Source: Ylistrum balloti
Taxonomy: Eukaryota
Length of the DNA: 64,000 nt
NCBI RefSeq assembly: GCF_031769215.1
Contig: NW_026782084.1
Location: 62,001 to 126,000, forward strand
Reading direction: 5' to 3'
Shown: piece after piece, positions 12,825-61,111 of the stretch
Layout of the letters: every line of letters starts with the position of its first letter
Numbering within the stretch: position 1 is the stretch's first letter
The notes under the pieces: generated by a model
What the model saw: the letters and a program-made list of their open reading frames with translations, nothing else
Database searches by the model: none
Told to the model about the DNA's origin: nothing
Position numbers and translations under genes: made by a program

Positions 12825-14420
12825 TTAGTATTTGGCACCTAAAATAGAAAACACACACATCAATAATTGATCTCAATGCGTTAAGTGTTACCTTCTCCGC
12901 TCTATTATTAGTGTATCTCTTATCTCGAAAGCAATAATAGTTACTAGCGATATTTGGAGAATATCGTTTTATATCAACTTTTATATATTGCATTTATAGA
13001 TCTAATTTCAATTGAAACTTCTAAATATCTTACCTCCTTGTCCACCGAATCCTCCATTTCCACCAAAGCCTCCATTACCTCCGAATCCGCCACCATTGCT
13101 TCCTCCAAATCCACCGCTTCCTCCGCCGCTCATTCCTCCGAATCCACCTTTGCCTCCAAATCCACCATTACCTCCAAATCCACCATTACCTCCAAATCCA
13201 CCATTACCTCCAAATCCACCATTACCTCCAAATCCACCACTTCCTCCAAGGCCGCCACCGCTCATTCCCCCGAATCCACCTTTTCCGCCCATTCCTCCAA
13301 ATCCACCGCTACCCATTCCCCCGAATCCACCTTTTCCTGCCAAGCCACCACCACTCATTCCTCCGAATCCACTGCTTCCTCCAAATCCACCGCTTCCTCC
13401 CAATCCACCTCCGTTCATTCCACCGAATCCACCATTTCCTCCAAAGCTTCCACCTTTTCCACCAAAACCACCTGCATTTCCACCAAATCCTCCACTACCT
13501 CCGAGTCCAGCAGCTCCTCCAAATCCTCCATTACCTGCTCCGCTCATACCACCAAATCCTCCTTTCCCTCCAAATCCACTACCACCGAGTCCACCACTTC
13601 CTCCAAACCCTCCACTGCTTCCGAAACCTCCACTTCCAGCGCTTCCCCCGCTACCTCCACCAAATCCACCACTTCCTCCGCCATATTTCCCTGAATCGAT
13701 AAATAACTTTACTTGAATATATGAATACAGAAATGCTAATAATTCATCAATTCACTTGAAGAACAATTCCAAAGTCTTTAATATTTAAACAATGTCAATT
13801 TTCAACCACAAAAGTGGAACGTTTGAAGCCATAGTCTCGATTTGTTCGAAGTTAAAGATATAGTTGACACAAAGGGTGTTTTCATGATCGATATATTATC
13901 AATTCTGTAGAATGAAGGTTTATTTAAAATCCTGATGAGTATCGCTCACATATATAACACATTTTGGCTGATAAGGATGCCGGTTACATTAAGTTTGCTT
14001 GTTTTTAAATATTATTAATTCGATAATTGATACTTGATAATTTAAAGACAGCGATCAAAACATGTTTTACTCTCTCATACTCGACACTCGCCATATAAAT
14101 CTTAGTCAGTGCAAATAAGGAACATCAGGTTTTCAAATGAGAACAGAGTATACAGCAAGGAAACGAATAAGCAAACTAATGAGCATCAAACACACCCAGT
14201 TTCATATATGAAAAAAGAATATTTATCAAGGAGATCACTAGGACGACCGAAAAAACTTCCCTATGATTTGTAACAACCTGCATCTTTTGAAACCCCGTGT
14301 TACGAGTTTGACCGTTAGTTGACGACAAAAATCAGGATAATGGGAACATGACCTTGTAAACCTACCTGCAGCGTTGACGCTGACTAGTAAGAGAGCGGTT
14401 AAACAGATGTAGGTATTCAT
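12825..14420 (-). CDS. Abductin-like Gly-rich secreted protein, copy A2 (~241 aa)
   Basis: CDS exons 14420-14366 (MNTYICLTALLLVSVNAA G|gt), 13690-13034 (ag|GKYGGG...GGQG G|gtaaga; 657 nt = 2+654+1), 12838-12825 (ag|GAKY*). Non-coding exon ends 14838; AATAAA at 12783-12788 and 12771-12776. Confidence 0.88.
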
Positions 14421-18894: not shown

Positions 18895-19720
18895 AGTTTC
18901 TCTATTCTTTTAGAAGTTCTAATTGTTTTTTCTTTTCTTTATATTCTGGTAAATATAATTGGAACATTTCCAAAATATATAATATTTTGCTTTTTTCAAA
19001 ATTGTACAAAATCCTTCCAAGTGAAAGGACATTACAATGTGAATTTCGAATTAGATAGAGTCAAATAATGAATTAAATTGCATCATACAGCTACTCCTTT
19101 CTTCAATGACTCGTCATTAATGCTAAGAACCCAAACTGTAAAATCTATGACTAAGGAAAAGCAAAGTTGCACGAAAAAATATCAATACCTGGATTAGGAG
19201 TATCACTGGCCCTAAAATCTCATATTATTCCATGCCTCTTTATAATAGCATTGTCCGTTTTTGACTGACTGGTAAATTATCAAGAATTTGTTTTTTATGA
19301 ACGTTTTGATATAGAGGTTTGCTGTAGAACACATAGCTTTAACTTTGTGGTAGTTTCGTACAATATATCCGGTAGAGTATACATATTTATATCATATATC
19401 GAAATAACGTGTGAGCAAAACAATGTTTTCAACGGTTTGGTGTATACCCCGTGCATTGAAATAAAATCAAATTTCAATCTGTGAAGGATTCGAGATAAGT
19501 TTTTTTCCCGACCGTAATATTTAGAACAGCGCATGCTAACAATTTCATTACCGAACATTTAAAGAGTCACTGATGCAGTATCTGAAGGGAAACGTGACAT
19601 GCTTTGTTATGGACATTTCAGTTGAAACAGTTCTGGTTTATTCTATTGATTTACAATTTTATTTCTTATTCATTGATTTTAGTTCGATTAATTAACCTAA
19701 AAAATCTAAAATTATTTTTG

Positions 19721-19758: not shown

Positions 19759-20621
19759 TCAAGAGCTCAAAGCGGCTGAGAAGGAAGGCTATAGCTCGGA
19801 AGAGTAAGTGATGCCTTTCTTGAGAATTTGTTGTGCTGAATAGTGTTTGGTTTGCTAGTTTTCAATCTCAGGCCTGGTAAATATTACCTCCATGTTGAGC
19901 GATCGTATTAATAATTAATAACAAACCTACATTAAAATGAATTGTAACTTTTGGTAGGATGGATTTTTTGAAGTTCCATTACAACATTGCTTTGAATTAT
20001 AACTTGAAGAAATATCTTTCCATCAACGACTACTGCGCTGAATTTGCTATTAGGTTAAGCTTTTCTGATGTTGCAGAAAGAGTGTTTTTGAAAGTGATTT
20101 CTTTGATAAGAGCACAAAAGGTGGGTACTACCAAGACATTGTATAAATCAGAATCAATACGACAAATAAAGGGAGTGCAGGTGTCTAAAATATCTATGTC
20201 ACTGTGCTCTGACAGAAAAAAAGATGAAAATGAAACCAATGAAAACAAACAAATAAGCACACATTAATCTAACATTGCTCTTTTATTAGCTACATGTACC
20301 AAAAAAGTGGATGTAATCGAACTGCCGTCAAATTAATATCCTCCACCTGAAAAAATTAAATAGAGCATACAGGCATTTCAAACTTTATGGATTCTAAGTA
20401 CATTATTTTTCATACCGAAGATGCAGTGTAATATTATGTAATCAATGAAAAATACAAAATCAAATACAAGATAAATACAACATGTTAATAAGATAAGGTA
20501 TATACCTTATGGATCTGAAATATATACATCATCTTTCTTCTCCTTGACATATCAGTAAATGTATGTGACCTCTACAGCAAATCTAGTAATATAATCATTC
20601 TCGTATTTTATTAAATGGGAA

Positions 20622-22951
20622 TTAAATAAACATACCGATTCTGCCGTTTCCACCTCCCATTCCTCCAAAAGGTCTATCGCCCATTCCTCCGGATGGTCCA
20701 CCTCCCATTCCTCCGCCCATTCCTCCTTTTCCACCGCCCATTCCACCGAATGGTCCTCCTCCCATTCCTCCAAAAGGTCCACTGCCCATTCCTCCGAAGG
20801 GACCACCTCCCATTCCACTTCCCATTCCTCCTTTTCCACTTCCCGATCCACCGAAGGGTCCTCCTCCCATTCCACCGAAGGGTCCACCTCCCATTCCTCC
20901 GAAGGGACCACCTCCCATTCCACCTCCCATTCCTCCTTTTCCGCCGCCCATTCCACCGAAGGGTCCTCCTCCCATTCCTCCGAAGGGTCCACTTCCCATT
21001 CCACCTCCCATTCCTCCTTTTCCGCCGCCCATTCCTCCGAAGGGTCCACTTCCCATTCCTCCTTTTCCACCACCCATTCCACCGAAGGGTCCTCCTCCCA
21101 TTCCTCCACCCATTCCTCCTTTTCCACCTCCCATTCCACCAAAGGGTCCTCCTCCCATTCCTCCGAAGGGGCTACCTCCCATTCCTCCACCCATTCCTCC
21201 TTTTCCACCTCCCATTCCACCGAAGGGTCCGCCTCCCATTCCACCGAAGGGTCCGCCTCCCATTCCTCCGAAGGGGCTACCTCCCATTTCTCCACCCATT
21301 CCTCCTTTTCCACCTCCCATTCCTCCGAAGGGACCACCGCCCATACCGCTCATTCCTCCTTTTCCACCGCCCATTCCACCGAAGGGTCCGCCTCCTGTTC
21401 CACCTCCACCCATACTTCCTCCCACACCACCGGACCCACCTCCATATGTACCTGTTCAAATAAATATTCACCCATAGTGATTTAGAATATACAATCTAGG
21501 TTTTCATCTTTCAATACCAATTGCTTACTAATTCACCAAAACGGATTTTCACCAAACGGATATCATCAAAGGTTTCCGTGAAAATTGAAATATTTTGCAC
21601 TCTCTTGTTTCATCGATTTTGAGTTTGAACTAAGAAGCTGTTTCGGGTTTCCTTGTTGCTTTTATATAATTATAACCCAATTCTGATAATAGTAACATAT
21701 TTGACCAATTATCCTTTAACTAACTCATTCGTCTCTTGTGAGCCTTTTAGCATATTTATTTTATATTACTGTTAATATCAATTATGATGAGGTAAGTATA
21801 CAGATAATTAAGTAGTTATTAACATGTTTTTACTACATATTCGGTCAAATAACAAATTCAAGAAGCCAATGGTTTGAAAAAATGATCTTGATGATATGCA
21901 AGCGTTCCGCATTCGATACCAATAATTCAATCATATCAATCCTTAAAATTCTACTAATTTGGCATCAAGTGAGCAAAAAAATCATATCAAAGAAATATAT
22001 CACTCACTGAAAAGTTTACTAAAATTTTAAGCATGTAGGGTTCTCACCAAAAAACAGTGATAAAGGTTAGTCAGAAAGTAGCTACATGTATGCAAAATAG
22101 GAAAGGATTCGGACCAACTTGCCGGATCTGTATCATTTTCTGAATATATATTTCACAGTAAACACGAAAACTCAAATATCATGGACCATTGGATCTAGAT
22201 TAAAACATTTTGAATTTTATGAAATAATCTATTTCATTGATTTTTTCCCTTTTTCTTACATTTTAACGAAATGACAGCTTAAAATTTCATGATATATCTA
22301 ATATTATTTCTGCCTTATTCCAATTAAACAATTTTTTCCAGAAGCATCGTATTTGGAAAAACATATCCTTGCTAACAACCAAACAGATAATCGTAAATGT
22401 TAATGTCTATTGTATTATGTGAGTTCAATTAATACTGAGAATTTAAATCAAAGAATTCAAACTTGATTCTTACTTGTGAAAAAGCAGATATTTTTTCATT
22501 GTTATAATATAGTAAAGTATGCACTTAATCAATTTATAGTTATCTGGAAGTATTGAAAAAATACACATTAATCAATGTTTCCTTTGTGACAAAGGTCGTC
22601 ACGCCCAAGGTATGGGGGCTAGTCAACAATGTTGTTCACGCGCTTTGCTCCCCCGAATTGGCAGACATGATTACAGTTTTCATAGCTAAACTAGAAAAAT
22701 GTAAAATAACAATTTTCATTCTGTTTGCATTTTATTCTCTATCCTCTACACAAAAATGTGCATTTATTCGACTTTCAGTAATGTTTTACCCGCAAGATTT
22801 CATATTCGATAATTTAAAGTGTGAAAGAATCGCCTTCATGCCCGTAAAATTAATAGTGTCCTGATATAAATCCTATTGGAATGAAATCAAACTTACCTGC
22901 TGAACTAACAGCCACAATAAGGCAGAAAGCTAGACAGATGAAGGCATTCAT
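20622..22951 (-). CDS. Abductin-like Gly/Met/Phe/Pro secreted protein A3 (~290 aa); C-terminus uncertain
   Basis: Exon 22951-22897 MNAFICLAFCLIVAVSSA G|gtaagt; exon from 21451 ag|GTYGGGSGG...(GGPFGGM, GGGKGGMGGGM repeats). End either unspliced ..RIGMFI* at 20622 with AATAAA at 20607-20612, or spliced at 20636 (G|gtatgt, frame fits) to EVTYIY* (20571-20552) or DP* (20514-20507). Non-coding exon ends 23738. Confidence 0.85.
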
Positions 22952-25945: not shown

Positions 25946-28900
25946 TACAATCTTCTGTAAACAAACAACAAAATAAAAATGAATAAATAAATATATATGT
26001 ATAGAAACAGCCGATGATATAGACGTATTTGGTATGGTAACCACCGCCGTTATAGTTGTATGTATTTGGTTTAGTTTCAGCCTCTGCTATAATTGTATTT
26101 CTTCAAAGGATGGTAGTCTTAAATTAAATTCTAAATGCTGCTATAAGCAAACAAATTCATAACAGAACTCTGGTTATATTATGTCAATGTATGATTTTGA
26201 GAAAGATAAATTGTACAGGTGTATTAAATTAAAAACGTTGTTTTACTTACTAATAGAAGGACGTTAAAGCTAATCATGACATAGAAGTTCAGATATTCGT
26301 TTCTTAATTCCAATTAAACATGGAAACTTATCTAGGATCACCAATGAAGATGTTTTACAATAAATACAATAAATGTTTGTAAATCAATATACTATTCTAC
26401 AAACTAAAAAGGAAAGACAATATATATATATATATTGGCGATATTTTGTTGGGAATATTTCTAAGAATGCTGGTTTGATAGTAGTATGCTATAGTTGATA
26501 CTTGATAACAACAAGGCAAGCTAAATCATGTTTTTTAAACATATTTTGTATTAACAGAATTTTATATTCTAAACTTAACTCACTCCTTAAATACGGATTC
26601 TGTTTCCTACAAATTAACATTTATCAAATATTTCCTCGTCAATAGTGTTAGTTATAATTAAATACCCTTATTGCATTATCTTAGTTAATCATGAATAAAC
26701 ATATGAATAACCGTTTTGTAATATATAAATATATATATATGTGTGTGTTGTTAAATCATTCTTTCAAATATACCATACTTACCATGATAACGATGATTTT
26801 ACGCCTTGACACAGATGTACGGGCCAGTATGGAGGGTTTCTTTAACTACTGGACAGTGGTCAAGGTTTTTATAGCCTGTGTAGCAGTATATTTATTGTCC
26901 TGTTTTCTTTTTAATGTGACAAAATCGTGATTTAAAATATTAAAAGGAATTTGTTTTTGCTGTGTATAATCAAATTTTCTTTTATGTATTTACAGTGGAC
27001 ACACTTCGGACATGTCCTGTAATTAACATGAGACCGGGTTATTCGTTTGTGCTGACCACAAATACATATGTTACGTTGTATAACAAGCAAGTAAAAGGAA
27101 AAACGGACAGGGGTGACTTAAAGGCTAACATCACACTTGGCAGTGTCCATTTGTATGTAGGTTCATACCGTCATTCCACTAAAGGAAACAATAAAAAAAA
27201 ATACAGCAATTCTTAATATGAAGGTATTCGGTATATCAATCATCCTTGTAAATATCTGTACAAGATGAAATAAAGGTAAACAGAAGTCATGTTGATATAT
27301 CTGAACATTTCTCGGATAGTAATTATATAAAAATATACAGGAGCAAAATGAATTCGCCATGATCTGAATAAGATGGTGCATTACTGCACTACTTTCACTG
27401 ATCGAGTGTAATAACTTGTTAAAAATAAAAAGTAAATTACGATTACGTTGATAAGAGACCCTGGAAATTGTAATATTTATTATGGATGTAGCTAAGTGTT
27501 TTGAAAACAGATGTCTACTTAGACGGCTACAAACAACTGAACATGAAGGATACTGGTTCCCCTCGGTATTTGGATTTCCTCTTGCTTCTATTAACAGGAT
27601 ACCATTTGGAGTATATTAAAGTAATGAGATAAATCCTTCACATAATTTCTTTAGTAACCTTAAGCATTTAAAGATTAATCAAGTTCCCCTTTTCACGACA
27701 GTTCAGTCATAAACGGATTTTTTCCTCCTTTCAAGCAATATGAGCTTAATTTCATATACAAAACGCGTTTAATAAATCTAACTTTTATTTATGACATTTT
27801 CATTAATTTTTTGTTCAGTGATTCCTCGCAAAACATGTTTACATTAATATGTTTGCTCACTCGTGTTACTATTGGAATGAATTAAAACGTGACATGCAGG
27901 TTAAGTATGAAATTAATTGAATTATGAAACCAGTGCACTAACCAACACGGATTTTGTCATTATCTATCGATATTTTGTGTGAAATCGGAATAGTCTACGG
28001 CACCATCGACCCTACAATAAGGTACAAATAAAACCTAGTACCACATTATCTAAGGTAGGACTCGATTGTAGGAAAACGCGAGATTTAGCGGGTATGGGAA
28101 TAGGCAACAAAAGGAATTCTTTAGACAATTCGTGTATGTTTATAAATATGAAAAAGAAAAATGATAAGGAGTATAAAAATGTACAAATGTTAGCGTAAAA
28201 GGGCATTAAAAGTTTATTTAAAAACTTATTTCACTGTGAATGTTGATTATGTGACGGATCGATTGTTTTGTTCTTTTCAATATCCTATCTTAATCTTCAA
28301 TATCACATGTTATACACACTTCCGTTGGACCATTAGTCCTCGAGGTTTGCTGTTTCCTGTTCGCCACATTTTCGTGCAATAGTGGCACGGCTCAGAGTTA
28401 CAAAAATATACTTAACATTGTTCTAATATTATCATATATATGAAAATCATGAAATTTATTGAATTGTAAATCTGGTGCACCTCTCGTCTAGATATTGACT
28501 TTTTTTTCGATCACATTAGGAATTCATAAGTCGGCTCCTTGGCTTCAAAATTTTGTCCCTGGGGAGTCTTTAAATGACGAAACAGCTGTATTATGCAGTT
28601 CAATTCATTGTCTGGATCTTCTCTATCTAGCTCTAAATTTGTATTAAAAATGCTATTCACTTTTCTTTTGCACAATTTTCTGACAATATGGAGAAGGACG
28701 TACCGCACTCAAGAAAATTTGATGCAAATTTCACATATCAAAACTAAATGAATTGTGTCGTGTAAACTTTAATCCATGATTTATGTTTATTGACGGACAT
28801 AAGTGCAACGACGACAGATTTTGATGCCAAATAAATACGTAAACATGAAAATAAATATGGAATTAATTTGAATCACCTGGACGATTTCTGGAAAAGAAAT

Positions 28901-29520: not shown

Positions 29521-31820
29521 TCCTTTTATTTTTTAATTAGTCTCTGTGTAAATCATTCGCTTTTTCATATTTTGCCCTAGTTTTATTGCGTCTTAGTTCG
29601 TATAATGATTATGATCATTTTGTGTTTTCTTGTTGTATATATATGTTTAATGAAATGAGTCGATGTTTTTGGCTTAATATTGTTTTTGATGTAATACTTT
29701 ACCATGGTCCCAGACATCATGCTACACGAAATGTTGATATGAAACCTCACAGGAAACATGTTAGGTTAAAGTTATTTCAACTGTCACATTGGTTTAACCA
29801 TAAAGAAATAGTATGTTTTGAATTAAAAATATATATAAGTGATTTGTCTTTTTCATATTTTAAGTGATGTTAGAGGCAAAACTTTTATAAATTCGAATAG
29901 CAAACTTCGGATTTAATAGGTATATAGTATATTGAAAAATGCTTAAATTTAATTTGTTTTCAAAGATTAAAAACAAAACAGGAAAATTGATATTATGTTA
30001 TATTCGTTTTGAGACTAAGTAGTAAGTGATTTGTGTGTAGTGTATGTTTTAACTATCCCTTGCATATTTGTGTATTACATATATAATTTTATGTTAATTT
30101 TGACCTTTTGAATGATATATAAACATGCTTTGTATGATAATAAATATGGAGTATGTTGTTTAGTCGTTTTGTAACTTTATGAGGCAAATCGACATTGGCT
30201 ATGTTTGACGACTACAGTAAAGTATTGTGGAGCGTGGTCAGTAATTTAATGAGTGACGTATCGGCGTATCTTCTCGAAAACGGGACTTGTGAAGGGTGTC
30301 AGTCTAAATATCACAGCGGACATCATGATTATTCATATGTCGCTCAGATTTTATTCATATCGACAATAAATGCAACCTGACAACCATTTAATAGTTGTAT
30401 TCATCTATAGATATTATCGTCTCTATTTGATCAAGTTTGTTGTATGGATACTTGATAAAGAACATTCCGATAATCCTAATCATATAAGTGATTGATTGAA
30501 AAGTGTAATGTGTGTTATCTGAGGCGATTAGAATGCACTGACATAACACAGAAAACACAAAATGTCATATCATTGATGTGTTATCTATTTCTATATTCCT
30601 GTAAGTATAATCCAGATTAAAAGTTAATTTCAAGCTGCATTGTAAAGGATAAAGAGGTAATACCACTTAGGGATTGGTTGCAACCACGAAAAGGGGATTG
30701 CGATGTCAGGAAATTAAATTAAAAGATAAGGAGCTAGTGAAATTTCTGTTGAAAGGCTCTATTATCTCGTGTCTTTTGTACAATTCTGGCAAAACCATCG
30801 ATGAATCGAATTTATGACCAGGAGGATAAAGTATGTGTTACTCTTATTCGATACCTTGATACACCTTAATAAATTACATGATTTCAATTCCATTTATGCC
30901 AAATACTACTCTAATGAGAATATAAAACACACCCTGATTCGTAAAGATAAGGAAAGTTTGATAATTTGTCTCATTATTAGTTTCTGTTTACCCATCTTTT
31001 ATTATGCATATAAGGCATAAACATCACTCTGCTTTATAATCCCGTTACAACCAATGTATCAAGCTACAATATGTAGTGCTGCTGATACCCTCTTTAACGT
31101 GTTACTCTACTTCATTACCATGACTATACTTTCAACATTACGTCCATAATTATGAATCATGATATCAATGTGAAAGATAGAGTTTAGCCCTAACTTGTAA
31201 ACAGGATAAAACCTCCAGTACCAAGCCCATTTCGGTAACCTCAAACCTAGAAAAATTCTTTTTTACCGAAAGTCTTGAAAATAATTCATTTCTTTGATTT
31301 TTCTCAGTCGCCTTCTAAAGTTTCAAACCTAAAACACTCAGCATCATTGTTGTGTCCTAGAAGGAGGAAATAATTGCATTATGCAATTTGATTAATCATT
31401 TAGCTCTACTGTATCCAATTCTAAAGTTGGATTGAAAGGTGCTATTCACTTGTGTATCTTTTACACAATTGTCATGTAATCTAAAAGCGTCACCAGAATA
31501 ATCTGTCGATGAGTTAAGGATAAGAAAATGTTAATATCACGCATTCTGTTCTCGGTTTGTGTTTTATTTAAATCTGTGAGCAGCATATGTTATAAAGCTC
31601 GGACTCACGAAAACAAAACAATAATCAAAGTAGTACAAAATTTATTTCTGTGGGTACAATTTATACATAGGTATAACAGGTCACTAATATTACTTTAACC
31701 ATTTTGCATTTTTTCATCTAAATATATTTATTGCTTTGAAAGAATATTTTGAAAATATTTACTATTCGATATTCAAGGACGCACATTTGTCAAAGGAGTT
31801 GACTTTCTGCTCTCATGTGT

Positions 31821-33552: not shown

Positions 33553-34824
33553 AGTAAGTTAATCTTACATACCATTAAAACCTGCCCATTTCACCTTTGT
33601 CATTGTAACTGACCAATGCAGGCGTGGCGTATATCCTGTCAGTACAAAACAAACATAACCCTAACTTTTAACTTGATTTCCATTTACTTACAGTAGCTCT
33701 TTCGGACTTCAGCTGTGACAGGTAAGAATACCAATGATAAACATGCAGTAATGTATTTCAATGATTTATTGTTGTCCATATTCACATTGATAATTTTTCA
33801 GTTTTTGTTTTTTTTTTATTTAAACATTTTTTTTCTGATGATGAAACATAGTAAATTAACTGTCAAACATCGGTAAATAAGATTTATAGCCTACTGAATA
33901 ATAATCCATATGAATGCAAAATTTCAGATTATGTAATACTCGAAAAACTCGTGCACCAAGGTAGATAACTCTTGTTAGTTCACTCTCATTAGTTTTTGAA
34001 TTATTTTATGATATCTTTCTATAGATTCTTCTACATCGAGTGCTGAAAACAATGAAGTACACCATTAACTGTATACTAGAACTTTTCTACTTAAGCATCG
34101 TCTATTTTGACATGCTTCAATTTTTTTTCTATTTTCAAGTCATTCATTTTCAAATATATACATTTCTGTAAATGAAACCGAGGCTTTTCTGTTTTACTTG
34201 CTGATTGTCAGACTTATCAGAAAAGAACTTCAATTAAGAGTTTATCAAAATACTTATTGGGTATAATAAAAATATGATTAGACTAACAAAACACAATTTA
34301 ATTTTTTGAAGTTACATGGTATCTTTTGTCGAATATTGGAGATTCTTGACTTCTGTTTCATTTCTTTTTGTTCTTCTGCAATATTGAAGCATATTACTCT
34401 ATATTCGGTCTGATTTCGTCTAATTTTGCACTAAAATAATAATACAAATTATTTAAATTATGTCTCATTATATTCTGTTTAATAGTTGATTTTTTTACAA
34501 TAAATATATCACAAATATTGATTACTGCAGTTCAGGAATGAACTGTACATTGCTATTACAGATACTATCATAGGCTAGGTCTAGAAGACACATGATTAAG
34601 ATGATATAAACAAATATCTGAATTACCCATCAATTTTATAATATAATGGTAAGCCGAGACACACATGTGAACAAACGTGAAGTAAAAGTGATTATTCAAG
34701 GTATACTGATAAATGTTTACTTCATTGCATGATGTCAACATATTTTTCTTGAGCGATACAAACCTCGTATGATTTAAGAAAACAATCATCTCTGTAGCGG
34801 AGTCTTCGACATATTGAAGTTTAG

Positions 34825-35227
34825 TATCACTGACGGGCCCTAGAAGGGTGAAACAGTTGTATGATGAAACGCCACTGATGAGTCCTAGAAAGACGAAACG
34901 ACTGTATGATGTAGCATCACTGACGAGCCCTAGAAGGGAAAATCAGCTGTATGATGCAACACCACTGATGAGTCCTAGAAGGACGAAACGACTGTATGAT
35001 GTAGCATCACTGACGAGTCCTAGAAGGGCGAAACAGTTGTATGATGAAACACCACTGATGAGTCCTAGAAGGACGAAACGACTGTATGATGTATCATCAC
35101 TGACGAGCCCTAGAAGGGCAAAACAGCTGTATGATGCAACACCACTGATGAGTCCTAGAAGGACGAAACGACTGTATGATATAGCATCACTGACGAGTCC
35201 TAGAAGGGCGAAACAGTTGTATGATGC
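34825..35227 (+). ncRNA. Tandem array of nine 45-nt minimal hammerhead ribozymes (alternating A/B units, 180-bp higher-order repeat)
   Basis: Each unit: 5-nt helix I strand, CUGANGA, helix II (GUCC/GCCC-UAGAA-GGAC/GGGC), GAAA, C-NNNN-G, UA, UGAUG, 3-nt spacer. CUGA cores start at 34830+45n. Units 2,4,5,6,8,9 have intact core nucleotides; 1,3,7 carry core mutations. Confidence 0.88.
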
Positions 35228-36225
35228 AGATCAATTCATTGTTTGGCTCTACCTACTGTATCAAACATTATTTTCGTTTGAAAGGTGAAATCGTTTGTGC
35301 CTTTTGTACAATCTTATGAGAGCAATGAAGTAATAAGTAAAATTTCGTATAATTATCCTCAGCTCATATAACTGATATTTTCTATTTGATTGGGTTCCCA
35401 CAGATGCCTCCGCCATTATCCAAGCAAATTGTACACGTCTTATTACCTGTTTCTATTGGGTTTATCATATTTTCTGTAGACTTTTTTATTCTATGATTTC
35501 AATTCAAGTGCCAACATTTTAATAGAATTAATGTGATTTTTTGCTTCAAATTTCTCCTCTGGACTTCTGCAGTCTGAACATTGCTGAAGAGTCCTAAAGA
35601 TGGTAAACGAGTGAACAGTACCTTTTGATTTAAATAGAGAAAAGGATACAGAGATATATTATGAATTAAACTGCATCATAAACCGTAATTCAATAATTTT
35701 CATTATTTTCATTTGTCCGATAATTTCAAAAGAAATGTCAGGTATATGTGCATATTCTGACCCGTGTCACTATTTCAATGAGTTAGAACGTGGTATACAG
35801 GTTACGGCTAACCTAATGGACTAGAACTCCATCAGCAATACCTATCACCCACAATCTTAAAGATTATACAAAAGACACATATACTATATATATAGTATAC
35901 GTTAGTTTATACAGTATCGATGAATGATTCGTTCATTATTTGTATATATGTTATACAATATCTTCAATAAATGTAATGTTTATGAATTAATCAGATGAAG
36001 TCTTTCCTCAAGGAAGCCGTTCCCCAATTTTTAAAGTGACTTCATCACAGATAGGAAGACCAATTAAACTATTTGAAATTGAATTTGATGAATAATAAGA
36101 CAACCAAGCAAAAGATATAACACTCATTCTAAGCGTATTGTGAATTATTTTCAAACAAGATTTGTTTTATCTATTTTACTTTGATTTGAAGTTTGCCTCC
36201 TAGGTTTCGAGATGCGGGTCCTAAG

Positions 36226-40187: not shown

Positions 40188-42889
40188 ATGAAGATGAATA
40201 CGTTTTTCAACAAATCCTTTCTCCTACTTTGCCATGTAATCTTGTTAGTGTCTGCTGGAGGAAGTTCTGAAATGATGAAGAAAATGATGGGAGGTATGTA
40301 AATACTGTCAGATTTGCATTTTAGTATTTAACTATAATATCATTTCTATTTTTCCATTTAATGTTCATTCCTTATTAAAACATTTTTGCGACTACTTTTA
40401 TATTTCTATTCATCAAGCTAATCAACAGTATAGACGATTTTACTTGAATGTACATTTGAACTAATCATTCTGTTTAAGTTGTTGATATTGGATAATAACT
40501 ATGTATTCCATTCATAAACGTATGCTTGGAAATAGCATAGAATGGTCGATGCAAAATATGATTTTATTCCAGGAAAAATGATGGGAATGCCAGCAATGCC
40601 GAAATCTATGGAAGGTATGTCTGCTGGTATGATGATGTCCATGTCTAATCCAATGATGCCAATGGGAGCAATGCCAATGGGTAGTATGCCGGTGAGCATG
40701 GGAATGAAGCCAATGGGCGGTATGGGAGGAATGCCTGCTGGTGGAAATCCTTCTGGAATGAAACCTGCAGGTCCGGCTCCTGACGAAATGGAAGGAATGG
40801 GTGCAGGCGAAGAGGCTGGAGCAGCAGCTAGTGCCCAGAAAGGAGGCAGCATGACGAACAATGTCATGATGATGATGGCTCCAATGGGCGGCGGCATGGG
40901 TGGAATGGGCATGATGCCAGGGGCAATGTCTCCGATGATGAAATACATGATGAAAAATAGGATGATGATGATGGGCGGTATGGCAATGAGACCCATGGGA
41001 AGTATGTCCATGGGTGGCATGAAACCGATGTACATGAAACCTACCGGAGGTATGCCAATGGGAGGTATGATGTCAGGTATGCCAATGGGTGGCATGAAAC
41101 CGATGGGCATGAAACCTACCGGAGGTATGCCAATGGGAGGTATGCCAATGGGTGGCATGAAACCGATGTACATGAAACCTACCGGAGATATGCCAATGGG
41201 AGGTATGCCAATGGGAGGTATGCCGAAGGGAGGTATGCCAATGGGTGGCATGAAATCGATGGGAGGTATGCCAATGGGAGGTATGCCAATGGGTGGCATG
41301 AAGTCGATGGGAGGTATGCCAATGGGTGGCATGAAACCGATGGGCATGAAACCTATGGGAGGTATGTCAGGTATGCCTATGGGTGGAATGAAACCGATGG
41401 GTATGAAACCTATGGAAGGTATGATGTCAGGTATGCCTAGTGGTGGAATGAAACCAATGGGCATGAAACCTATGGGAGGTATGATGGGTGGTATGCCAAT
41501 GGAAGGAATGATGGGTGGTATGCCAATGGGAGGAATGATGGGTGGTATGCCTATGGAAGGAATGAAACCTATGGGTATGAAACCTATGGGAGGTATGATG
41601 TCAGGTATGCCTATGGGTGGAATGGAACCAATGGGCATGAAACCTATGGGAGGTATGATGTCAGTTATGCCTATGGGTGGCATGAAACCGATGGGCATGA
41701 AACCTATGGGAGGTATGATGTCAGGTATGCCTATGGGTGGAATGAAGCCGATGGGCATGAAACCTATGGAAGGTATGATGGGTGGTATGCCTATGGAAGG
41801 AATGAAACCGATGGGTATGAAACCTATGGGAGGTATGATGGGTGGAATGCCAATGGAAGGAATGATGGGTGGTATGCCAATGGGAGGAATGATGGGTGGT
41901 ATGCCTATGGGTGGAATGAAACCGATGGGTATGAAACCTATGGGAGGTATGATGGGTGGTATGCCAATGGAAGGAATGATGGGTGGTATGCCGATGGGAG
42001 GAATGATGGGTGGTATGCCTATGGAAGGAATGATGGGTGGTATGCCTATGGAAGGTATGCCTATGGGAGGTATGAAATCAAGTGGTATGGAACCTATGAA
42101 AGGCATGATGGGTGGTATGCCTAAGGAAGGTATGAAACCTATGTCACCCATGCCGTCGAATTCGAAACGTAAGTAAAACAATTTGAATCACACGCTTTAG
42201 TTGTGAATATAATGAATCTTTGAGATATCTTCCTTTTCCCATTTATGAATTTATGAATCAAACATGATATTCTAAAATGGAAATGTGTTCTTGTTCTAAA
42301 CGGAGATGAATACGGGTTGCTTCGGGAGGTCAAGGTCGAGCCCATATTAAACGGGAAATATTTTATTCCATTTTTAGCTTAAATTCTCAAATCAATAACA
42401 ATGAAACATGACATGTTTATGTTAGCAATCTTTAAAGGCTATCAATTTAGGTCAAATGTCAAATAGTTAGAACGCATGTTATTTGCATATGAGAGGATAC
42501 AAGTAATAATCTACAATCGTACAATCGGTGGCCAATTGAAAAGATAATTATCTTATTTACTCTTTGGTTCAAACACAGATGATTTGTTTCTTTGGGGCCT
42601 CCCTTAAAACTATTTTATTACTATTTGTTTTCATCATCGAACGCGATTGATATCGCCTGATCACTTTCTGCTATCACTTGTTCAAACTATTCCACTGTAT
42701 TTCACCTGTATCTTGATTAAGTTACAGGTGCAAGTTTGTATAAATAAGAAAAAATCATATGTATTCAGATCAATGAAGATAATAATACTAATATATATAT
42801 ATACATTTATCTTAAATATTTATATTTATGAATTTTACTGGCACTTCTGTAATGAAGAATATTTTTTTCTTTCAGGAGGATCATACTAA
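40188..42889 (+). CDS. Secreted Met/Gly/Pro/Lys-rich repeat protein (~571 aa; MPMGG, MKPMG, GMMGG repeats)
   Basis: Exons 40188-40293 (MKMNTFFNKSFLLLCHVILLVSAGGSSEMMKKMMG G|gtatgt), 40573-42168 (ttccag|..1596 nt..SNSK C|gtaagt), 42876-42889 (tttcag|RGSY*); AATAAA at 42968-42973. Frames all close. Confidence 0.88.
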
Positions 42890-47159: not shown

Positions 47160-48105
47160 TGCAGCATAATATGACTGATACAACACCTCGCATACAACAG
47201 AATCATCTATATACACATTAACATAACATGACTGATACAACACCTCGCATACAACAGAATCATCTATATACACATTAACACAATATGACTGATACAACAC
47301 CTCGCATACAACAGAATCATCTATATACACATTAACATAACATGACTGATACAACACCTCGCATACAACAGAATCATCTATATACACATTAACACAATAT
47401 GACTGATACAACACCTCGCATACAACAGAATCATCTATATACACATTAACATAACATGACTGATACAACACCTCGCATACAACAGAATCATCTATATACA
47501 CATTAACACAATATGACTGATACAACACCTCACATACAACAGAATCATCTATATACACATTAACATAATATGACTGATACAACACCTCACATACAACAGA
47601 ATCATCTTGATACACATTAACATAACATGACTGATACAACACCTCACATACAACAGAATCATCTTGATACACATTAACATAACATGACTGATACAACACC
47701 TCACATACAACAGAATCATCTATATACACATTAACATAATATGACTGATACAACACCTCACATACAACAGAATCATCTTGATACACATTAACATAACATG
47801 ACTGATACAACACCTCACATACAACAGAATCATCTATATACACATTAACATGATATGACTGATACAACACCTCACATACAACAGAATCATCTATATACAC
47901 ATTAACATAATATGACTGATACAACACCTCACATACAACAGAATCATCTTTATACACATTAACATAATATGACTGATACAACACCTCACATACAACAGAA
48001 TCATCTATATACACATTAACATAATATGACTGATACAACACCTCACATACAACAAATTTATCTACATCCACATTAACATAATTTCACTGATACAACACCT
48101 CGTAT
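47160..48105. repeat. 57-bp minisatellite, ~17 copies
   Basis: Unit tgactgatacaacacctc(g/a)catacaacagaatcatctatatacacattaacataa(t/c)a; the 314-aa minus-strand ORF is its by-product. Confidence 0.95.
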
Positions 48106-48150
48106 ACTACAACCTATGCCGTTTTCTGCGCTTAACAGTTTAAGCCTTAA

Positions 48151-48190
48151 TCACTGACGAGTCCCAGAAGGACTAAACACTTGTCAGTGT
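48151..48190 (+). ncRNA. Degenerate solo hammerhead copy (G12 to U)
   Basis: tca ctgacga gtcc cagaa ggac taaa cacttgtc; downstream flank resembles the flank of the array (35230-35330). Confidence 0.55.
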
Positions 48191-50076: not shown

Positions 50077-53000
50077 ATGCTGTCTATAACACTATTCCTG
50101 AAACCGTTTCTTTTGCTGGGACTTGTGTTTGGCTACAGTGCGGGTGGTACTGGAGGTGCCGGAGGTAAAGGAGGTAAGACATGTCTATACACCACACTTG
50201 TTTACTGTCCTGTAATATAAAATGCATTTATGTTCCTATGAATACATCCAGAATAACACGAGTTAATGGTAGCCATGACAGGAAATAAAATTAAATAGCG
50301 GTATGTTTAACAAAACCTACATGATTTGTCAGATCCGTTCTTTCTGTGAAGAATTATTATTGAGTAAATGTTTAAGGGACTAAATGATAAGATTTTGTTA
50401 TTTTTCCCGTGCGTTTATTTTCGGGCAAGCATTGAAATGCTTAAAATTGGACTCTTCACAAAATTATAACACTCTCTGAGGAAAATTGATAAAGATTATC
50501 AGCATCAAACCAACGCTAGTCGACACTCGCTATTGTGTCTATCAATCATCGCTGTTTTGACGTTGTTAATAAAATGGTTATCCAAACTTTACAATATCAT
50601 AATTATCAGAGAGTACAAAAATTTTAACATATATTTAAATTTTGTAATATTTTTATCAGTTATGATATTTATACCTAACCATTTAGTCCCTTTGAATAAA
50701 AAGGTTGTATTGCTTTCAGATAAACTCTCTTTGCATAATATTTTACAAAATGTTCAAGATGTTGTAATATTTTTCAATGATAAAAGAAGATTAATCGGGA
50801 AAACTACTAGAAGATATCGTACGTAATTTATAGAAGACATTTTGTGTGTACATTGTGGACAGGGGTTTAACTTTAAAATCTGAATGGATGTTCATGTACC
50901 ATTAATTGGCTAGACTAGCAAACGGCTCCTATATCAATATCAGGATATAATTATTCCTAGACCAAGATTAATGATATATTTGGTAGTTCGCTAGTACACT
51001 GGCTATGTATCGCTAGCTTTATTATGTCTAATTAAACATTGAAAAACAACAGGTTTTATAACTGATCTCATGTGCATCATAAAGAAATATTCTCTGTATG
51101 ACATGTTTGTGTTGTGTATATAAGATTAGGGTCCTCTCTATATGACATTTTTGTGTTGTTGTGTATATAAGATTAGGGTCCTCTCTGTATGACATTTTTG
51201 TGTTGTTGTGTATATAAGATTAGGGTCCTCGCTGTATGACATGTTTGTGTTGTTGTGTATATAAGATTAGGGTCCTCTCTATATGACATGTTTGTGTTGT
51301 TGTGTATATAAGATTAGGGTCCTCTCTATATGACATGTTTGTGTTGTTGTGTATATAAGATTAGGGTCCTGTCTATATGACATGTTTGTGTTGTGTATAT
51401 AAGATTAGGGTCCTCTCTATATGACATTTTTGTGTTGTTGTGTATATAAGATTAGGGTCCTCGCTGTATGACATGTTTGTGTTGTTGTGTATATAAGATT
51501 AGGGTCCTGTCTATATGACATGTTTGTGTTGTTGTGTATATAAGATTAGGGTCCTGTCTATATGACATGTTTGTGTTGTTGTGTATATAAGATTAGGGTC
51601 CTCGCTGTATGACATGTTTGTGTTGTTGTGTATATAAGATTAGGGTCCTCGCTGTATGACATGTTTGTGTTGTTGTGTATATAAGATTAGGGTCCTGTCT
51701 GTATGACATGTTTGTGTTGTTGTGTATATAAGATTAGGGTCCTCTCTATATGACATGTTTGTGTTGTTGTGTATATAAGATTAGGGTCCTCTCTATATGA
51801 CATGTTTGTGTTGTGTATATAAGATTAGGGTCCTCTCTATATGACATGTTTGTGTTGTTGTGTATATAAGATTAGGGTCCTCTCTATATGACATGTTTGT
51901 GTTGTTGTGTATATAAGATTAGGGTCCTCGCTGTATGACATGTTTGTGTTGTTGTGTATATAAGATTAGGGTCCTCTCTATATGACATGTTTGTGTTGTG
52001 TATATAAGATTAGGGTCCTGTCTATATGACATGTTTGTGTTGTTGTGTATATAAGATTAGGGTCCTCGCTGTATGACATGTTTGTGTTGTTGTGTATATA
52101 AGATTAGGGTCCTCGCTGTATGACATGTTTGTGTTGTTGTGTATATAAGATTAGGGTCCTGTCTGTATGACATGTTTGTGTTGTTGTGTATATAAGATTA
52201 GGGTCCTCTCTATATGACATGTTTGTGTTGTTGTGTATATAAGATTAGGGTCCTGTCTATATGACATTTTTGTGTTGTTGTGTATATAAGATTAGGGTCC
52301 TCTCTATATGACATTTTTGTGTTGTTGTGTATATAAGATTAGGGTCCTCTCTATATGACATGTTTGTGTTGTGTATATAAGATTAGGGTCCTCTCTATAT
52401 GACATTTTTGTGTTGTTGTGTATATAAGATTAGGGTCCTCTCTATATGACATGTTTGTGTTGTTGTGTATATAAGATTAGGGTCCTCTCTATATGACATT
52501 TTTGTGTTGTTGTGTATATAAGATTAGGGTCCTCTCTATATGACATTTTTGTGTTGTTGTGTATATAAGATTAGGGTCCTCGCTGTATGACATGTTTGTG
52601 TTGTTGTGTATATAAGATTAGGGTCCTCTCTATATGACATTTTTGTGTTGTGTATATAAGATTAGGGTCCTGTCTGTATGACATATTTGTGTTGTTGTGT
52701 ATATAAGATTAGGGTCCTCTCTGTATGACATGTTTGTGTTGTGTACAGAAGATTCAAAGAATTTATTTATTTTTTTTTTTATTTTTTGAAGGCGCTAACG
52801 GTGGAGGAAAAGATGGAGGTACAGGAAAGTCTGGTATGGGAGGCGAAGCAGGAGGAGCCATGATGATGCCATCTGGTAATCTTTGTTTCCGACATCCCTC
52901 TGTAATAACAATCAGATAAGATGAATTATGAGATACGTGTTAAGCTGTTTTAGATCCGAAATCATATACAAGAAATTCTGGACAGCGTCCATCACTTTAA

Positions 53001-55963: not shown

Positions 55964-56685
55964 GCTGCCGTCGGTTTTGATATCGTCTAGCTGACTGGGT
56001 ATAACCCATTTCATCTACACTACTAGCGGTCTTTCCTCTCATCGCCCTATGTACCGGCGAGGACAATTCACGTGTACACGGCGGACGAAGCTGTAGAATA
56101 CTTAAACTGTATATAGATTGTACTGAAATGCAAATCGAAGTCTTATCCTATTAGGGGACATATACGTTACATATATTACTGTTTGTTCAATCATTATATA
56201 TTTTTTCTTGAAATAAAAAAAATGCACTGTATTGACTTTTGTTCGCGTTTTGAAACAAGATATATATGTATTCATTCATCACTTCGCAGTCTGAAATTCC
56301 CCAGCTAGGTGATTTGGTGCCGTAGATCCTGAGTTCGAGACCCGGACAGGGCACGAGTCAAACTTGTCTTCCTTTGTTAATTGTGTTACAATTGATATAT
56401 ATAATTTTATCGTATTTATGAACTGAACAAAGAAGTTTTTAATTATCTTACTAAATTCCTAGTTAAATAACCTATGTCTATTTGCAGGTAAGTACATGGG
56501 GGTTGAGCTCACTGTTTTAACAGGTCTATTTATGAATTAACCGTTGTTATATAACTTTTGTAATGAACAGTTTTATCTAATTTACCCCCATTTAATACAA
56601 TCTAATATAGAATAAATAGTATTTACATTCATTTTCAATAGCAATTTAGAATTAAATACAACAGATTAAAAAAATGAATTAAACT

Positions 56686-56734
56686 GCATCAATTGATACA
56701 GCTGTTTCGTCATTCCAGGACTCGTCAGTTATGC
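56686..56734 (-). ncRNA. Solo hammerhead copy with intact core but disrupted helix I
   Basis: Minus strand GCAUAA CUGACGA GUCC UGGAA UGAC GAAA C AGCU GUA UCAAU UGAUGC: palindromic ACAGCUGU; 5-nt insertion after the cleavage triplet. Confidence 0.65.
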
Positions 56735-58805
56735 CAAGAGTCCGAAGTAACGAGAAAGAATCTAAGTAAATCAAGATTGGTCAAATGAAATACGCTCGCC
56801 CTAAACTCAATCTATTTAATCAATTTCAAATTTCAGATAACTTCAAAAGGGCGTTTCATGTCTATTCAAACCTCTATGTTGAAAGACAGTCTTGTGTATC
56901 TGTTAAAACGTGGAATGCCGGTTAATGAATTCGTCCATGTAATATTTTGATATGTGTAAATACCTTCGTATTGATAGTAAAACACAGACGCATGCATGTA
57001 GTGGTTAAGAAAGAACAGCCTTCCCTTATTTGTTCATACAGAAACAAGAAACACCGATATGTATTTTGTCTGATGTTGGGCACATAGTTTACATTACTGC
57101 ATGTATGATAGGGGGGGGGGCTGGTGGTTTATACCAAGGTATGATTAAGGAATATGACTAGGTTTTCTTATTACTGTGTCTTGTTCTACAGTATTCCATT
57201 GCTGTGATTTTTTTTTTAATTTTTGAGGGTGTGTGTTGTTTGTTTGGTTTTTTATCACCTTATAGCCGAAGTTGCTGGAATATACTAACCTTAACAATTT
57301 GATATCACATGCAAAACATATAAAATGCATAAATAATTATATATATATGTAACACTATTAAGTTTTGTTACAGGCTGTTTACTGCACTGATTAATCAAAT
57401 AGGCGTGGTCCTTGATCTAGTATACAGTAATAAACAAAGTCACAAACATGGTTTATGTCTACTTTCATTCATCTGAACTTCAAGTGACCTGATAATAAAG
57501 GAAAATCTTCAGAAGTCACACAGCATAGATGTTCTGACACAGATTGTGATATTCCGTGTGATAAACATTTAATAAACAAACACATATGCAATTCCTTGAC
57601 AAACCTGACGTATTGGTATAAAACAATTCCTGAATCAGTATGAGCAGTGTCAAAAACTTTCTCTGCCCCCTCCCCCCTCAAAAAAAATACCCCAAAACCA
57701 AACCAAACCAAAAAAAAAAGAAAGAAAGAAAAGGTCCCTCGCTATTTACCCTCTATCTATTTTCGGGTAGAATCACACATATTAGTTGTTTTTATCTTTA
57801 GGTCTTTTAACTTACAAGCAAAACACTGTGGGCCTGTGACAAGGCTTACAACATCACAGAGCTCACACTGTAACAAACACATATATCCTAAAACTAACAC
57901 AGAATATACCGTCATGTCAGCAGAATTATAATCCAAACCCTAATTGAAAAAAGTATTCAAAATATGAACAAAAGAAAGATTTACACAGAGAATCCTGATG
58001 TTATACAAAGAAGACATGACCAGGTGTGACAGAAGTGTAGACATCTACGGCTTTATCAATAACACTCGCAAGTAAATAAAACATAGCAGAATGAAAACAC
58101 CAGGCAAACAATGGAAATATTCACAATAGGGAAAAGAAGAAAACCTCACACTTATTCAGCTTGGTGGAAAGCTTTTCTTGTTGGTTTCATCATAGGAAAA
58201 GATGGAAGTAAAGGGCTGATGTAGAAGAGACTGTCATGGAAATTATGTGATTTAATTCTGTCTCTGGTTATTGCACTCAGTCATTCAGACACACAAAAGT
58301 CTGTACATTACTTCTTTTCAACATATTTATTATACATCATCATCAATTACATTTAATTCTAGATTTACAAATGCACATTTTATGTGACATACTTAGACTA
58401 ATTAACATGTACATGTACACCTCATTTGTTCAACTTTTAGATACGAACTACGACTTATAATTGTACAAAATTGTTAAAATTACAGATTAACATATTGAGA
58501 TTTACTTCAATTTTCCAGTCTGAGTTACATACAACGATTCTTAAAGTGTCGCCATTCTCAAGCATACATATATGTCATTAAATTTAACTTTTACTCTAAC
58601 CTGAATAATACCATAGTATTGTACTTGGATAAGTAAACTCTGTATCCGAGATGTGTTTGCAAAATTCAAAAGCAAAACAACAGCAAATTTCTTGAATATA
58701 TCACCTATCTCCAGTGTAGAAATACATAACAACCGAAGCTTGCAATCATTCAGCCTGTAACCATTTTGTTCTATTATAAAGCTTTAGAGTTGAAATGAAG
58801 GTTTA

Positions 58806-60554: not shown

Positions 60555-61111
60555 GCTGAAATGTGATTCTGCTAATCGTCCGCAGGTAAGTGTAGAGACT
60601 CCCACCGTGTTATCTTTGCATCTACTTCCGGTCTGTCTAAATATTTTATGAAAGCACGGAAAATGGATATCCGGTTTTTTTAAAAAACAAAATGGTAACG
60701 ACATATGTTAAATAAGGTTTTCTCGTTGAAAGTAGAGTTAGTATTAATTAGTCAAATTTCAGAAGTAGAAAATCGACCTTGAATAAAGGGATCAAACAAA
60801 TTGATACATACATATGTGTGAACATGAGACCACGATTTAATATACATTACATGATTGAGACACATCAGCACGACGATATAACAGTGTTATTAATTTGTAG
60901 TTTAAATTTAAATTATAATCCTCCCACTAAACTAATTCTACAAGATCTTGTAATGAAACAACTTAAATATATGTATATATTTGACACTGGAAAACAACAT
61001 AGGGATTCTGGATGTATGAGGAAATCAAAGGCAAAGCATATGACATTTTTGACGTTCGCTGCCTTTGATAGTGCAGTGAGTGTTAGCAAGGGAACTGGAT
61101 TCTGTCTCACA

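Follow-up and report, generated by a model that had tools for sequence, protein, structure and literature searches.

Tandem and dimeric hammerhead ribozymes are known, and the ribozyme-bearing repeats described so far carry a spacer of 150 to 400 nucleotides (nt) or more. In Penelope-like elements, minimal type I hammerheads with a palindromic helix III act as dimers (PMC4209133; Lunse et al. 2017, as far as it is cited in PMC6765202). Metazoan retrozymes have monomers of about 150-400 nt that include a structured spacer (PMC7229834, PMC7761336); those of Mytilus galloprovincialis, which lack long terminal repeats (LTR), are repeats of 350-390 nt (PMC7229834). Double hammerheads have been reported for newt satellite 2, avocado sunblotch viroid (ASBVd) and satRPV RNA (Forster et al. 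1988 and Song et al. 1999, as cited in PMC4209133 and PMC6765202). Among bivalve mobile elements, internal tandem arrays are found in DTC84, a miniature inverted-repeat transposable element (MITE) of Donax (PMC3879986), and in Helentrons of Crassostrea gigas (PMC7492417). The present analysis concerns a 64,000-nt stretch of the Ylistrum balloti genome (contig NW_026782084.1, positions 62,001 to 126,000 of the forward strand; hereafter the window), where 407 bases at 34822-35228 (+) hold nine head-to-tail copies of a 45-nt hammerhead unit. We consider it probable that this array is the expanded ribozyme module of a mobile element and that adjacent units can combine into type III-like or double hammerheads; these would probably cleave if transcribed.

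Layout of the array and state of its units

Analysis with Tandem Repeats Finder (TRF) described the array either with a period of 45 (8.9 copies, 78% matches) or with a period of 90 (4.5 copies, 92%). Each 45-nt unit is made of a 42-nt minimal hammerhead and a 3-nt linker, which is all that parts neighbouring motifs. From 5' to 3' it contains the 5' strand of helix I (CAUCA or CACCA), CUGAYGA, a 4-bp helix II with the loop UAGAA, GAAA, a 7-nt helix-III strand, A17, the 3' strand of helix I (UGAUG) and the linker. The CUGANGA boxes start at 34830+45k, with k from 0 to 8. The pattern CTGANGA-N(8-20)-GAAAC is present seven times in the window, against 0.38 expected from shuffled sequences; six occurrences lie inside the array and one at 56704-56728 (-). 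A preliminary description of the locus, made from the letters of the DNA, had proposed nine 45-nt units with 42 nt of minimal hammerhead in each, and TRF, the parsing of the units and the table of their helices all agree with it.

The units belong to three types, which carry different helix-III strands: ACAGUUGU in type A (units 1, 5 and 9), ACGACUGU in type B (units 2, 4, 6 and 8) and, in type A', either the palindromic ACAGCUGU (unit 7) or UCAGCUGU (unit 3). The alternation of A and B has a period of 90 nt. The matrix of differences between units (none for 4 vs 8, one position for 5 vs 9, two for 2 vs 6 and three for 3 vs 7) reveals in addition a 180-nt higher-order repeat, A-B-A'-B, of which the array holds about 2.25 copies. 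The array and its units are as follows, all on the plus strand:

34822..35228 (+), whole array, as delimited by TRF, unit parsing and the unit difference matrix
34817..34861 (+), unit 1, type A; core dead, CUGACGG with A9 changed to G; its first bases are flank and not repeat
34862..34906 (+), unit 2, type B; intact core, with a C x A mismatch that weakens helix II
34907..34951 (+), unit 3, type A'; dead, with GGGAAAAT in place of GGGCGAAA, G12 and A15.1 being lost
34952..34996 (+), unit 4, type B; core and helix II intact
34997..35041 (+), unit 5, type A; core intact, one U·G pair in helix II
35042..35086 (+), unit 6, type B; intact
35087..35131 (+), unit 7, type A', with the palindromic ACAGCUGU; dead through the change of G12 to A
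35132..35176 (+), unit 8, type B; intact, same sequence as unit 4
35177..35221 (+), unit 9, type A; intact, continuing into the 3' part of the parent element

The invariant positions scored were C3 U4 G5 A6 N7 G8 A9, G12 A13 A14, the A15.1-U16.1 pair and H17. On this basis the core is complete, with GUA as the cleavage triplet, in six of the nine units (2, 4, 5, 6, 8 and 9) and broken in units 1, 3 and 7. Unit 3 (GGGAAAAU) shows further damage, namely a G x A mismatch that closes helix II and the replacement of A15.1 by U. The loss of G12 in units 3 and 7 had been recognised in the preliminary description, while the A9-to-G change that also inactivates unit 1 had been overlooked.

Pairing between units and predicted folds

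The helix-III strands of A and B units pair together over all 8 positions, with a single G·U, whereas two B strands form 6 of 8 pairs and leave two central mismatches; both points had been correctly anticipated. Two A strands reach 8 of 8 pairs with two G·U. Thus a short self-complementary helix III is found in A units, with the two G·U pairs, and as a true palindrome in A' unit 7 and in the solo copies of the motif described below, but not in B units. At the core, three helices can be assembled: helix II of 4 bp, helix III of 8 bp between neighbours and helix I, which is a 5-bp hairpin at B-to-A junctions and has 4 of 5 bp at A-to-B junctions. The B-to-A hairpin, UGAUG-UAG-CAUCA, is complete (5/5 bp) from unit 4 to unit 5, while from unit 8 to unit 9 (35168-35220) it has 4 bp instead of 5. 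The candidate two-unit hammerheads are the following:

34988..35040 (+), unit 4 to unit 5 (B-to-A), the best type III-like hammerhead; canonical minimum-energy fold, Hammerhead_3 score 43.0 bits, predicted cut after 34996
35168..35220 (+), unit 8 to unit 9, the second B-to-A type III-like hammerhead; canonical minimum-energy fold, predicted cut after 35176
35033..35085 (+), unit 5 to unit 6, an A-to-B type III-like hammerhead; helix I of 4/5 bp with an A x C mismatch, Hammerhead_3 score 42.5 bits, predicted cut after 35041
34943..34995 (+), unit 3 to unit 4, an A'-to-B candidate with a mismatch inside helix III; Hammerhead_3 score 37.7 bits, predicted cut after 34951
35123-35175 (+), the twin A'-to-B candidate; Hammerhead_3 score 37.7 bits

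In RNAfold predictions, the canonical three-helix type III structure is the minimum for 34988-35040 (-14.2 kcal/mol, 34% of the ensemble) and also for 35168-35220 (-12.1 kcal/mol). For the A-to-B segment 35033-35085 helices II and III form and the mismatched helix I does not, while the A'-to-B segments do not adopt the canonical fold at their energy minimum. The two B-to-A folds had been postulated in the preliminary description; type III is indeed their minimum-energy structure, with the reservation that helix I of the second one is shorter than was assumed. Pairs of units, 90-95 nt long, can also be drawn as a nested double hammerhead with an outer helix I, two helix II hairpins, a shared 8-bp helix III and an inner helix-I hairpin. 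The modelled energy of this 95-nt structure is -16.5 kcal/mol for units 4+5 and -16.0 for units 5+6, about 4 kcal/mol above the respective minima (-20.7 and -20.2). In silico, then, two units form an extended helix III that is common to two catalytic sites.

A check with the Rfam models, which the preliminary description had proposed, was run on the window and gave hammerhead matches in the array, all below the curated gathering thresholds (48.5 bits for RF00008, Hammerhead_3; 34 bits for RF00163, Hammerhead_1). When E-value thresholds were applied, the matches in the array were full length and on the plus strand only. Searching the window, Hammerhead_3 scored 37.7 bits at 34944-34994 and 35124-35174, both A'-to-B, and 34.9 bits from unit 1 to unit 2; on isolated segments it scored 43.0 bits for 34986-35041 (unit 4 to unit 5), where every pair is standard, and 42.5 bits for the junction of units 5 and 6. 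The E-values of this model ranged from 4e-9 to 1e-5 in the stretches searched. Hammerhead_1, applied to single units, gave 28.3, 27.3 and 22.5 bits, below its threshold.

Among the predicted cuts, those at the B-to-A sites after 34996 and 35176 are the best supported by the folding models, while the cuts predicted after 35041, 34861, 34951 and 35131 are weaker. The two former positions, exactly 180 nt apart, are those given in the preliminary description. The A-to-B and A'-to-B junctions had not been considered there as type III candidates. Predicted cutting is limited neither to B-to-A junctions nor to a 180-nt spacing, and a 90-nt spacing appears as plausible, because the A-to-B junction of units 5 and 6 reaches 42.5 bits and none of the four B cores is broken.

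Relation to a dispersed repeat and weighing of alternatives

Blastn within the window and an alignment show that the 3' flank of the array, 35222..35310 (+), which begins with UGAUGCAGAUCAAUUCAUUG, shares homology with the 3' part of a dispersed repeat that itself bears a hammerhead. The preliminary description had treated the array as a free-standing satellite, an idea that is untenable now that its flank is seen to belong to this repeat. The window contains at least four solo copies and a fragment of it:

28540..28700 (+), solo copy; core decayed (CTGGGGAG), helix III palindrome ACAGCTGT (blastn, alignment)
56590..56760 (-), solo copy; CUGACGAG...GAAACAGCUGUA present, helix I broken by a 5-nt insertion (blastn, alignment)
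31335..31475 (+), decayed solo copy (blastn, alignment)
about 19000..19130 (-), decayed solo copy (blastn, alignment)
48150-48184, fragment of the dispersed repeat (blastn)

The better-preserved solo copies (28540-28700, 56590-56760 and about 19000-19130) have the palindromic helix III ACAGCUGU, which is located at 28579 and 56708, and the family consensus of helix I is GCAUCA/UGAUGC. Such a layout is the classic one of minimal type I hammerheads working as dimers (PMC4209133, PMC6765202). The solo motif at 56690-56733 (-) retains an intact CUGACGAG...GAAACAGCUGUA core and a 3-bp helix II, and has CAAUU inserted after the cleavage site, ahead of the helix-I strand; Rfam gave no match for it at E up to 1. 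Two segments of about 90 nt, 76% identical and inverted relative to each other, were also observed: 35687-35777, about 460 nt downstream of the array, and 28375-28465, about 100 nt upstream of the 28.5-kb solo copy. They may belong to one and the same composite mobile element, present in the two orientations.

Since the array continues into the 3' part of a repeat that also exists as solo copies, it can be read as an expanded module of a mobile element; the expansion within the element is documented on the 3' side only. The history that we infer would start from a 42-nt minimal type I hammerhead and a 3-nt linker, belonging to a dispersed repeat of retrozyme-like or Penelope-like type. This module would have been copied head to tail nine times, and unequal exchange would then have reshaped the array into the 180-nt A-B-A'-B higher-order repeat. 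After copying, UGAUG, the 3' strand of helix I, and the CAUCA of the next unit would make a hairpin, while the short, originally palindromic helix-III strands of neighbouring units could pair together. A plus-strand transcript could then fold into type III-like or nested double hammerheads built from two adjacent units, with the predicted cut of each fold placed behind the GUA that its upstream unit provides. B would have changed so that it pairs poorly with itself or with the palindrome, while a single C-to-U change compensates for this in A, with which B pairs fully. At the B-to-A junction, the linker UAG and the strand CAUCA correspond to the sequence that the parent repeat has upstream of its hammerhead, so that no special selection is needed for the hairpin or for the type III permutation. 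The junction fold had been presented as a special design, a claim that had to be abandoned: it arises automatically when a type I hammerhead with a 3-nt linker is copied head to tail.

The relationships between units point, from their sequences, to the usual picture of unequal exchange at the DNA level. The array itself appears as a recent 180-nt duplication, and the G12-to-A defect of A' would predate the duplication of the 180-nt block. Divergence is greatest in unit 1, at the edge, as unequal exchange within an array would lead one to expect. Between the consensus sequences of A and B, 8 to 9 of 45 positions (18-20%) differ, none of them an invariant core base: loop 1 has three of the differences and the helix-III strands another three, and there is one each at N7 (a free position of the core), in helix II and in helix I, where the B helix is weakened. 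Helix II covaries across unit types: the pair is U-A in B units and C-G in A' units, and A units 5 and 9 have U·G, the intermediate of a compensatory change from U-A to C-G. The G-to-A change at position 4 of the helix-III strand of B would mismatch C5 of the palindrome and pairs with U5 of A. By enumeration, 8/8 pairing survives in 2.8% of cases when one strand takes two random changes and the other takes one, and in 27% if only transitions are considered; with B fixed as it is, full pairing is regained by one of 18 possible single changes in its partner, the very change that A carries.

This compensation is suggestive of a constraint on the inter-unit helix, but falls short of a compelling case, since units that belong to a single array cannot count as independent observations. 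It is the sole part of the original observation that would still need an explanation, with weak statistics at this locus. Thus, of the heterodimer variant proposed in the preliminary description, the A/B complementarity of helix III is confirmed, while selection for it rests on one compensatory pair in one recently duplicated array. Were the compensation to hold in independent arrays as well, it would provide direct evidence, from evolution, that minimal hammerheads are used as dimers in vivo, a long-standing question that dates from the finding of their poor cleavage in vitro. If it fails, the locus would be a satellite seeded by a ribozyme module, useful for the annotation of bivalve repeats and against the over-counting of ribozymes in genome scans.

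Several points weigh against active two-unit hammerheads in an expanded module. No match is found anywhere in the window at the Rfam gathering thresholds; fold z-scores against shuffled sequences are modest (-1.3 to -1.9), and for dimers that include A' the double hammerhead lies more than 10 kcal/mol above competing folds. For published minimal hammerheads of this kind, cleavage in vitro is poor even in dimeric form (PMC4209133). No significant blastn similarity links the 5' flank to the solo copies, only about 10 nt being aligned. Finally, a single public sequencing run contains the stretch; the kind of this run is not on record, it is stored as assembled contigs without molecule ends, and it shows no evidence of transcription. 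Over 33800-36200, the summed word depth in this run reaches about 4.7e5 in the array, against about 8 on the adjacent flank, and about 5,100 contigs match, many of whose ends carry other flanks. Near-identical units are therefore very abundant in the sequenced sample; this depth is not a copy number and cannot separate DNA from RNA.

The same evidence can be arranged in other ways. The A/B or A-B-A'-B block could be a functional replicating module under selection, whose transcripts would self-cleave to 90- or 180-nt RNAs, be circularised by a host ligase and be copied through rolling circle by the reverse transcriptase of a retroelement, giving and spreading spacer-less arrays. Rolling-circle copying has been published as the model for retrozymes of metazoans (PMC7229834; bioRxiv 10.64898/2026.07.22.740005), and the two best predicted cuts, after 34996 and 35176, would free exactly one 180-nt higher-order unit; the absence of A/B differences in the invariant core, the single partner change among 18 that restores pairing with B and the apparent abundance of the family in the sequencing run (about 4.7e5 vs about 8) are in line with it. 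On the other side, the last unit leads into non-repeated sequence, namely the 3' part of a dispersed element, and the array has a degenerate edge unit and three dead cores, which is typical of satellite dynamics at the DNA level, while the compensation statistic is weak (2.8%, or 27% with transitions only) and comes from units that are not independent of each other. This replicating module seems to us unlikely, as does, to a slightly greater degree, the wider proposition that the A/B alternation is the selected design of a genome-wide family, the smallest retrozyme, with a 90- or 180-nt monomer consisting only of two to four mutually completing hammerheads and self-cleaving as a heterodimer in cis. 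If true, it would be notable.

The array could instead be an inert relic, derived from hammerheads and lacking stabilising loop-loop contacts, that misfolds in an untranscribed intergenic stretch and never cleaves in vivo, the A/B complementarity being a chance variant fixed by amplification. The scores below the Rfam thresholds, the competing folds, the three dead cores out of nine, the low in vitro activity of minimal hammerheads (PMC4209133), the 27% of transition-only cases in which pairing is kept by chance and the lack of an evident plus-strand gene near the array would all suit a relic. However, six cores keep all the invariant bases despite 18 to 20% divergence between A and B, compensatory changes are present both in helix II and in the inter-unit helix III, and the canonical fold is the energy minimum at two junctions; we judge complete inertness quite improbable. 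A repeat unrelated to ribozymes, either a coding one (a 146-amino-acid (aa) open reading frame (ORF) at 34848-35288) or one resembling C/D-box small nucleolar RNAs (snoRNAs), is highly implausible. One frame per strand is open, or nearly so, across the array, and there are weak C/D-box matches (Afu_190, 23.2 bits, E 0.019), with UGAUGA similar to box C and CUGA similar to box D; against this, the hammerhead models match over their full length, with E of 1e-6 or better. The coding version was discarded, as the translations of both strands have no related protein among 5.8 billion sequences, and so was the snoRNA version, whose matches are far below the thresholds (35 or more) and are caused by the hammerhead core CUGAUGA. 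The expanded-module reading is retained as the probable one, with cleavage that we infer from the predicted folds, and no host function is assigned to this locus, which is decaying, as its three dead cores show.

The sub-threshold Afu_190 matches lie at 35039-35149 and 34859-34969 (+), with 23.2 and 22.5 bits, respectively; they arise because boxes C and D are imitated by the CUGAUGA core and by the junction GUAUGAUGA, and arrays of this kind may in this way give rise to spurious snoRNA annotations. A pattern scan of metagenome and viral contigs yielded four single, unrelated hammerhead-like motifs and no array. An identical 25-nt sequence, CUGAUGAGUCCUAGAAGGACGAAAC, is present there as single motifs in an unrelated context in environmental or viral contigs (L001 758-782, L003 11262-11286, L002/L004). 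These contigs presumably carry phage-type hammerheads; the sequence of this helix II and its loop thus turns up repeatedly and independently. A B-specific 20-mer had one match, in a rumen Clostridiales assembly, which was rejected as a chance one without hammerhead core, and none in the viral contigs.

Surroundings of the array and comparison with described systems

The array is located between minus-strand and plus-strand clusters of genes for Met/Gly-rich repeat proteins, and the ORFs of the window give no evident plus-strand gene around it. Besides low-complexity repeat proteins no ORF of at least 130 aa was found in the window, and a Pfam search of six ORFs detected neither a reverse transcriptase nor an endonuclease. 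A nearby Penelope-like ORF was also considered as a candidate and none was found in the window. The five long Gly/Met-rich or Gly/Phe-rich repeat ORFs are:

4655-5621 (-), repeat ORF
12954-13716 (-), repeat ORF
20552-21463 (-), repeat ORF
40542-42176 (+), repeat ORF
53564-55327 (+), repeat ORF

The short repeats of these five ORFs include MPMGGMKPMG, GGMMGGMPGMGG and PFGGMGGG; the one ORF tested had no Pfam match, and these proteins look like mollusc structural proteins of shell-matrix or byssus type. Other tandem arrays of the window are found, the first two well preserved, at 51091-52742 (47-nt unit, 35.5 copies, 94% matches, higher-order repeat of 279 nt) and at 47165-48101 (57-nt unit, 16.4 copies, 95%), both without hammerhead features, the latter being read through by a 314-aa minus-strand ORF with no credible Pfam match, and at 1446-1864 (30-nt repeat, 14 copies, higher-order repeat of 120 nt, 97% matches). 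At 60408-60704 (-), an ORF fragment adjoining a run of N at about 60.9-61.1 kb matches a TXNDC17-like thioredoxin domain (Pfam PF06110, 36.3 bits) and is probably an exon of a host gene.

In the open-access literature no paper was found that prints the ribozyme sequence of the array or describes a hammerhead array without spacers; the spacer-less A/B array, for which no description had been known at the outset, thus appears to be undescribed in that literature. With the hammerheads of Penelope-like elements the array shares the minimal core, the short palindromic helix III (ACAGCUGU, in A' units and solo copies), the predicted need for a partner copy and the association with a dispersed repeat. 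Differently from them, its partner is the adjacent unit, 45 nt away and with no spacer, diverged A and B units pair as a heterodimer and not as a palindromic homodimer, and the window contains neither an ORF for a reverse transcriptase or a GIY-YIG endonuclease nor a pseudo-LTR. The array may be a non-autonomous Penelope-like derivative.

Similarly to metazoan retrozymes, the locus consists of tandem DNA repeats, each with a type I hammerhead, in an AT-rich invertebrate genome. However, its monomer is of 45 nt (90 or 180 nt for the higher-order units) instead of about 150-400 nt, and only the 3-nt linker is found in place of a non-ribozyme body able to form a paired, rod-like circle; moreover, the sequence of the cloned mussel hammerhead (GCGUCA...GCGC-GUC) is unlike that of the array. 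The behaviour of the array in the genome has, by analogy, a more mundane frame in the bivalve elements that carry arrays: DTC84 and the Helentrons also have a short satellite-like array inside a dispersed element, and many short arrays across the genome, although the unit that they repeat is not a ribozyme.

The type III hammerheads of RF00008, found in viroids, plant satellite RNAs and plant LTR retrozymes, have the same open helix III, 5-bp helix I with a 3-nt loop and 4-bp helix II as the two-unit folds. Conversely, the array scores below 48.5 bits, resides in an animal host and reaches this topology by permutation across a repeat junction and not as a stand-alone motif; it would be a natural example of how tandem duplication turns a type I hammerhead into a type III one. 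The mechanism proposed for the array is the one known from double hammerheads (Forster et al. 1988, as cited in PMC4209133) and from the minimal hammerheads of Penelope type. In double hammerheads, as in the array, two units with a weak helix III share one extended helix III, and the 90-nt A+B dimer forms in silico a nested structure with two junctions. The known pairs, as they appear in the citing papers, are identical units, placed hundreds of nt apart on multimers or on separate molecules, while in the array they are adjacent and not identical. An array with no spacer, in which neighbours would supply each other's helix III and helix I, can be regarded as the limiting case of such arrangements.

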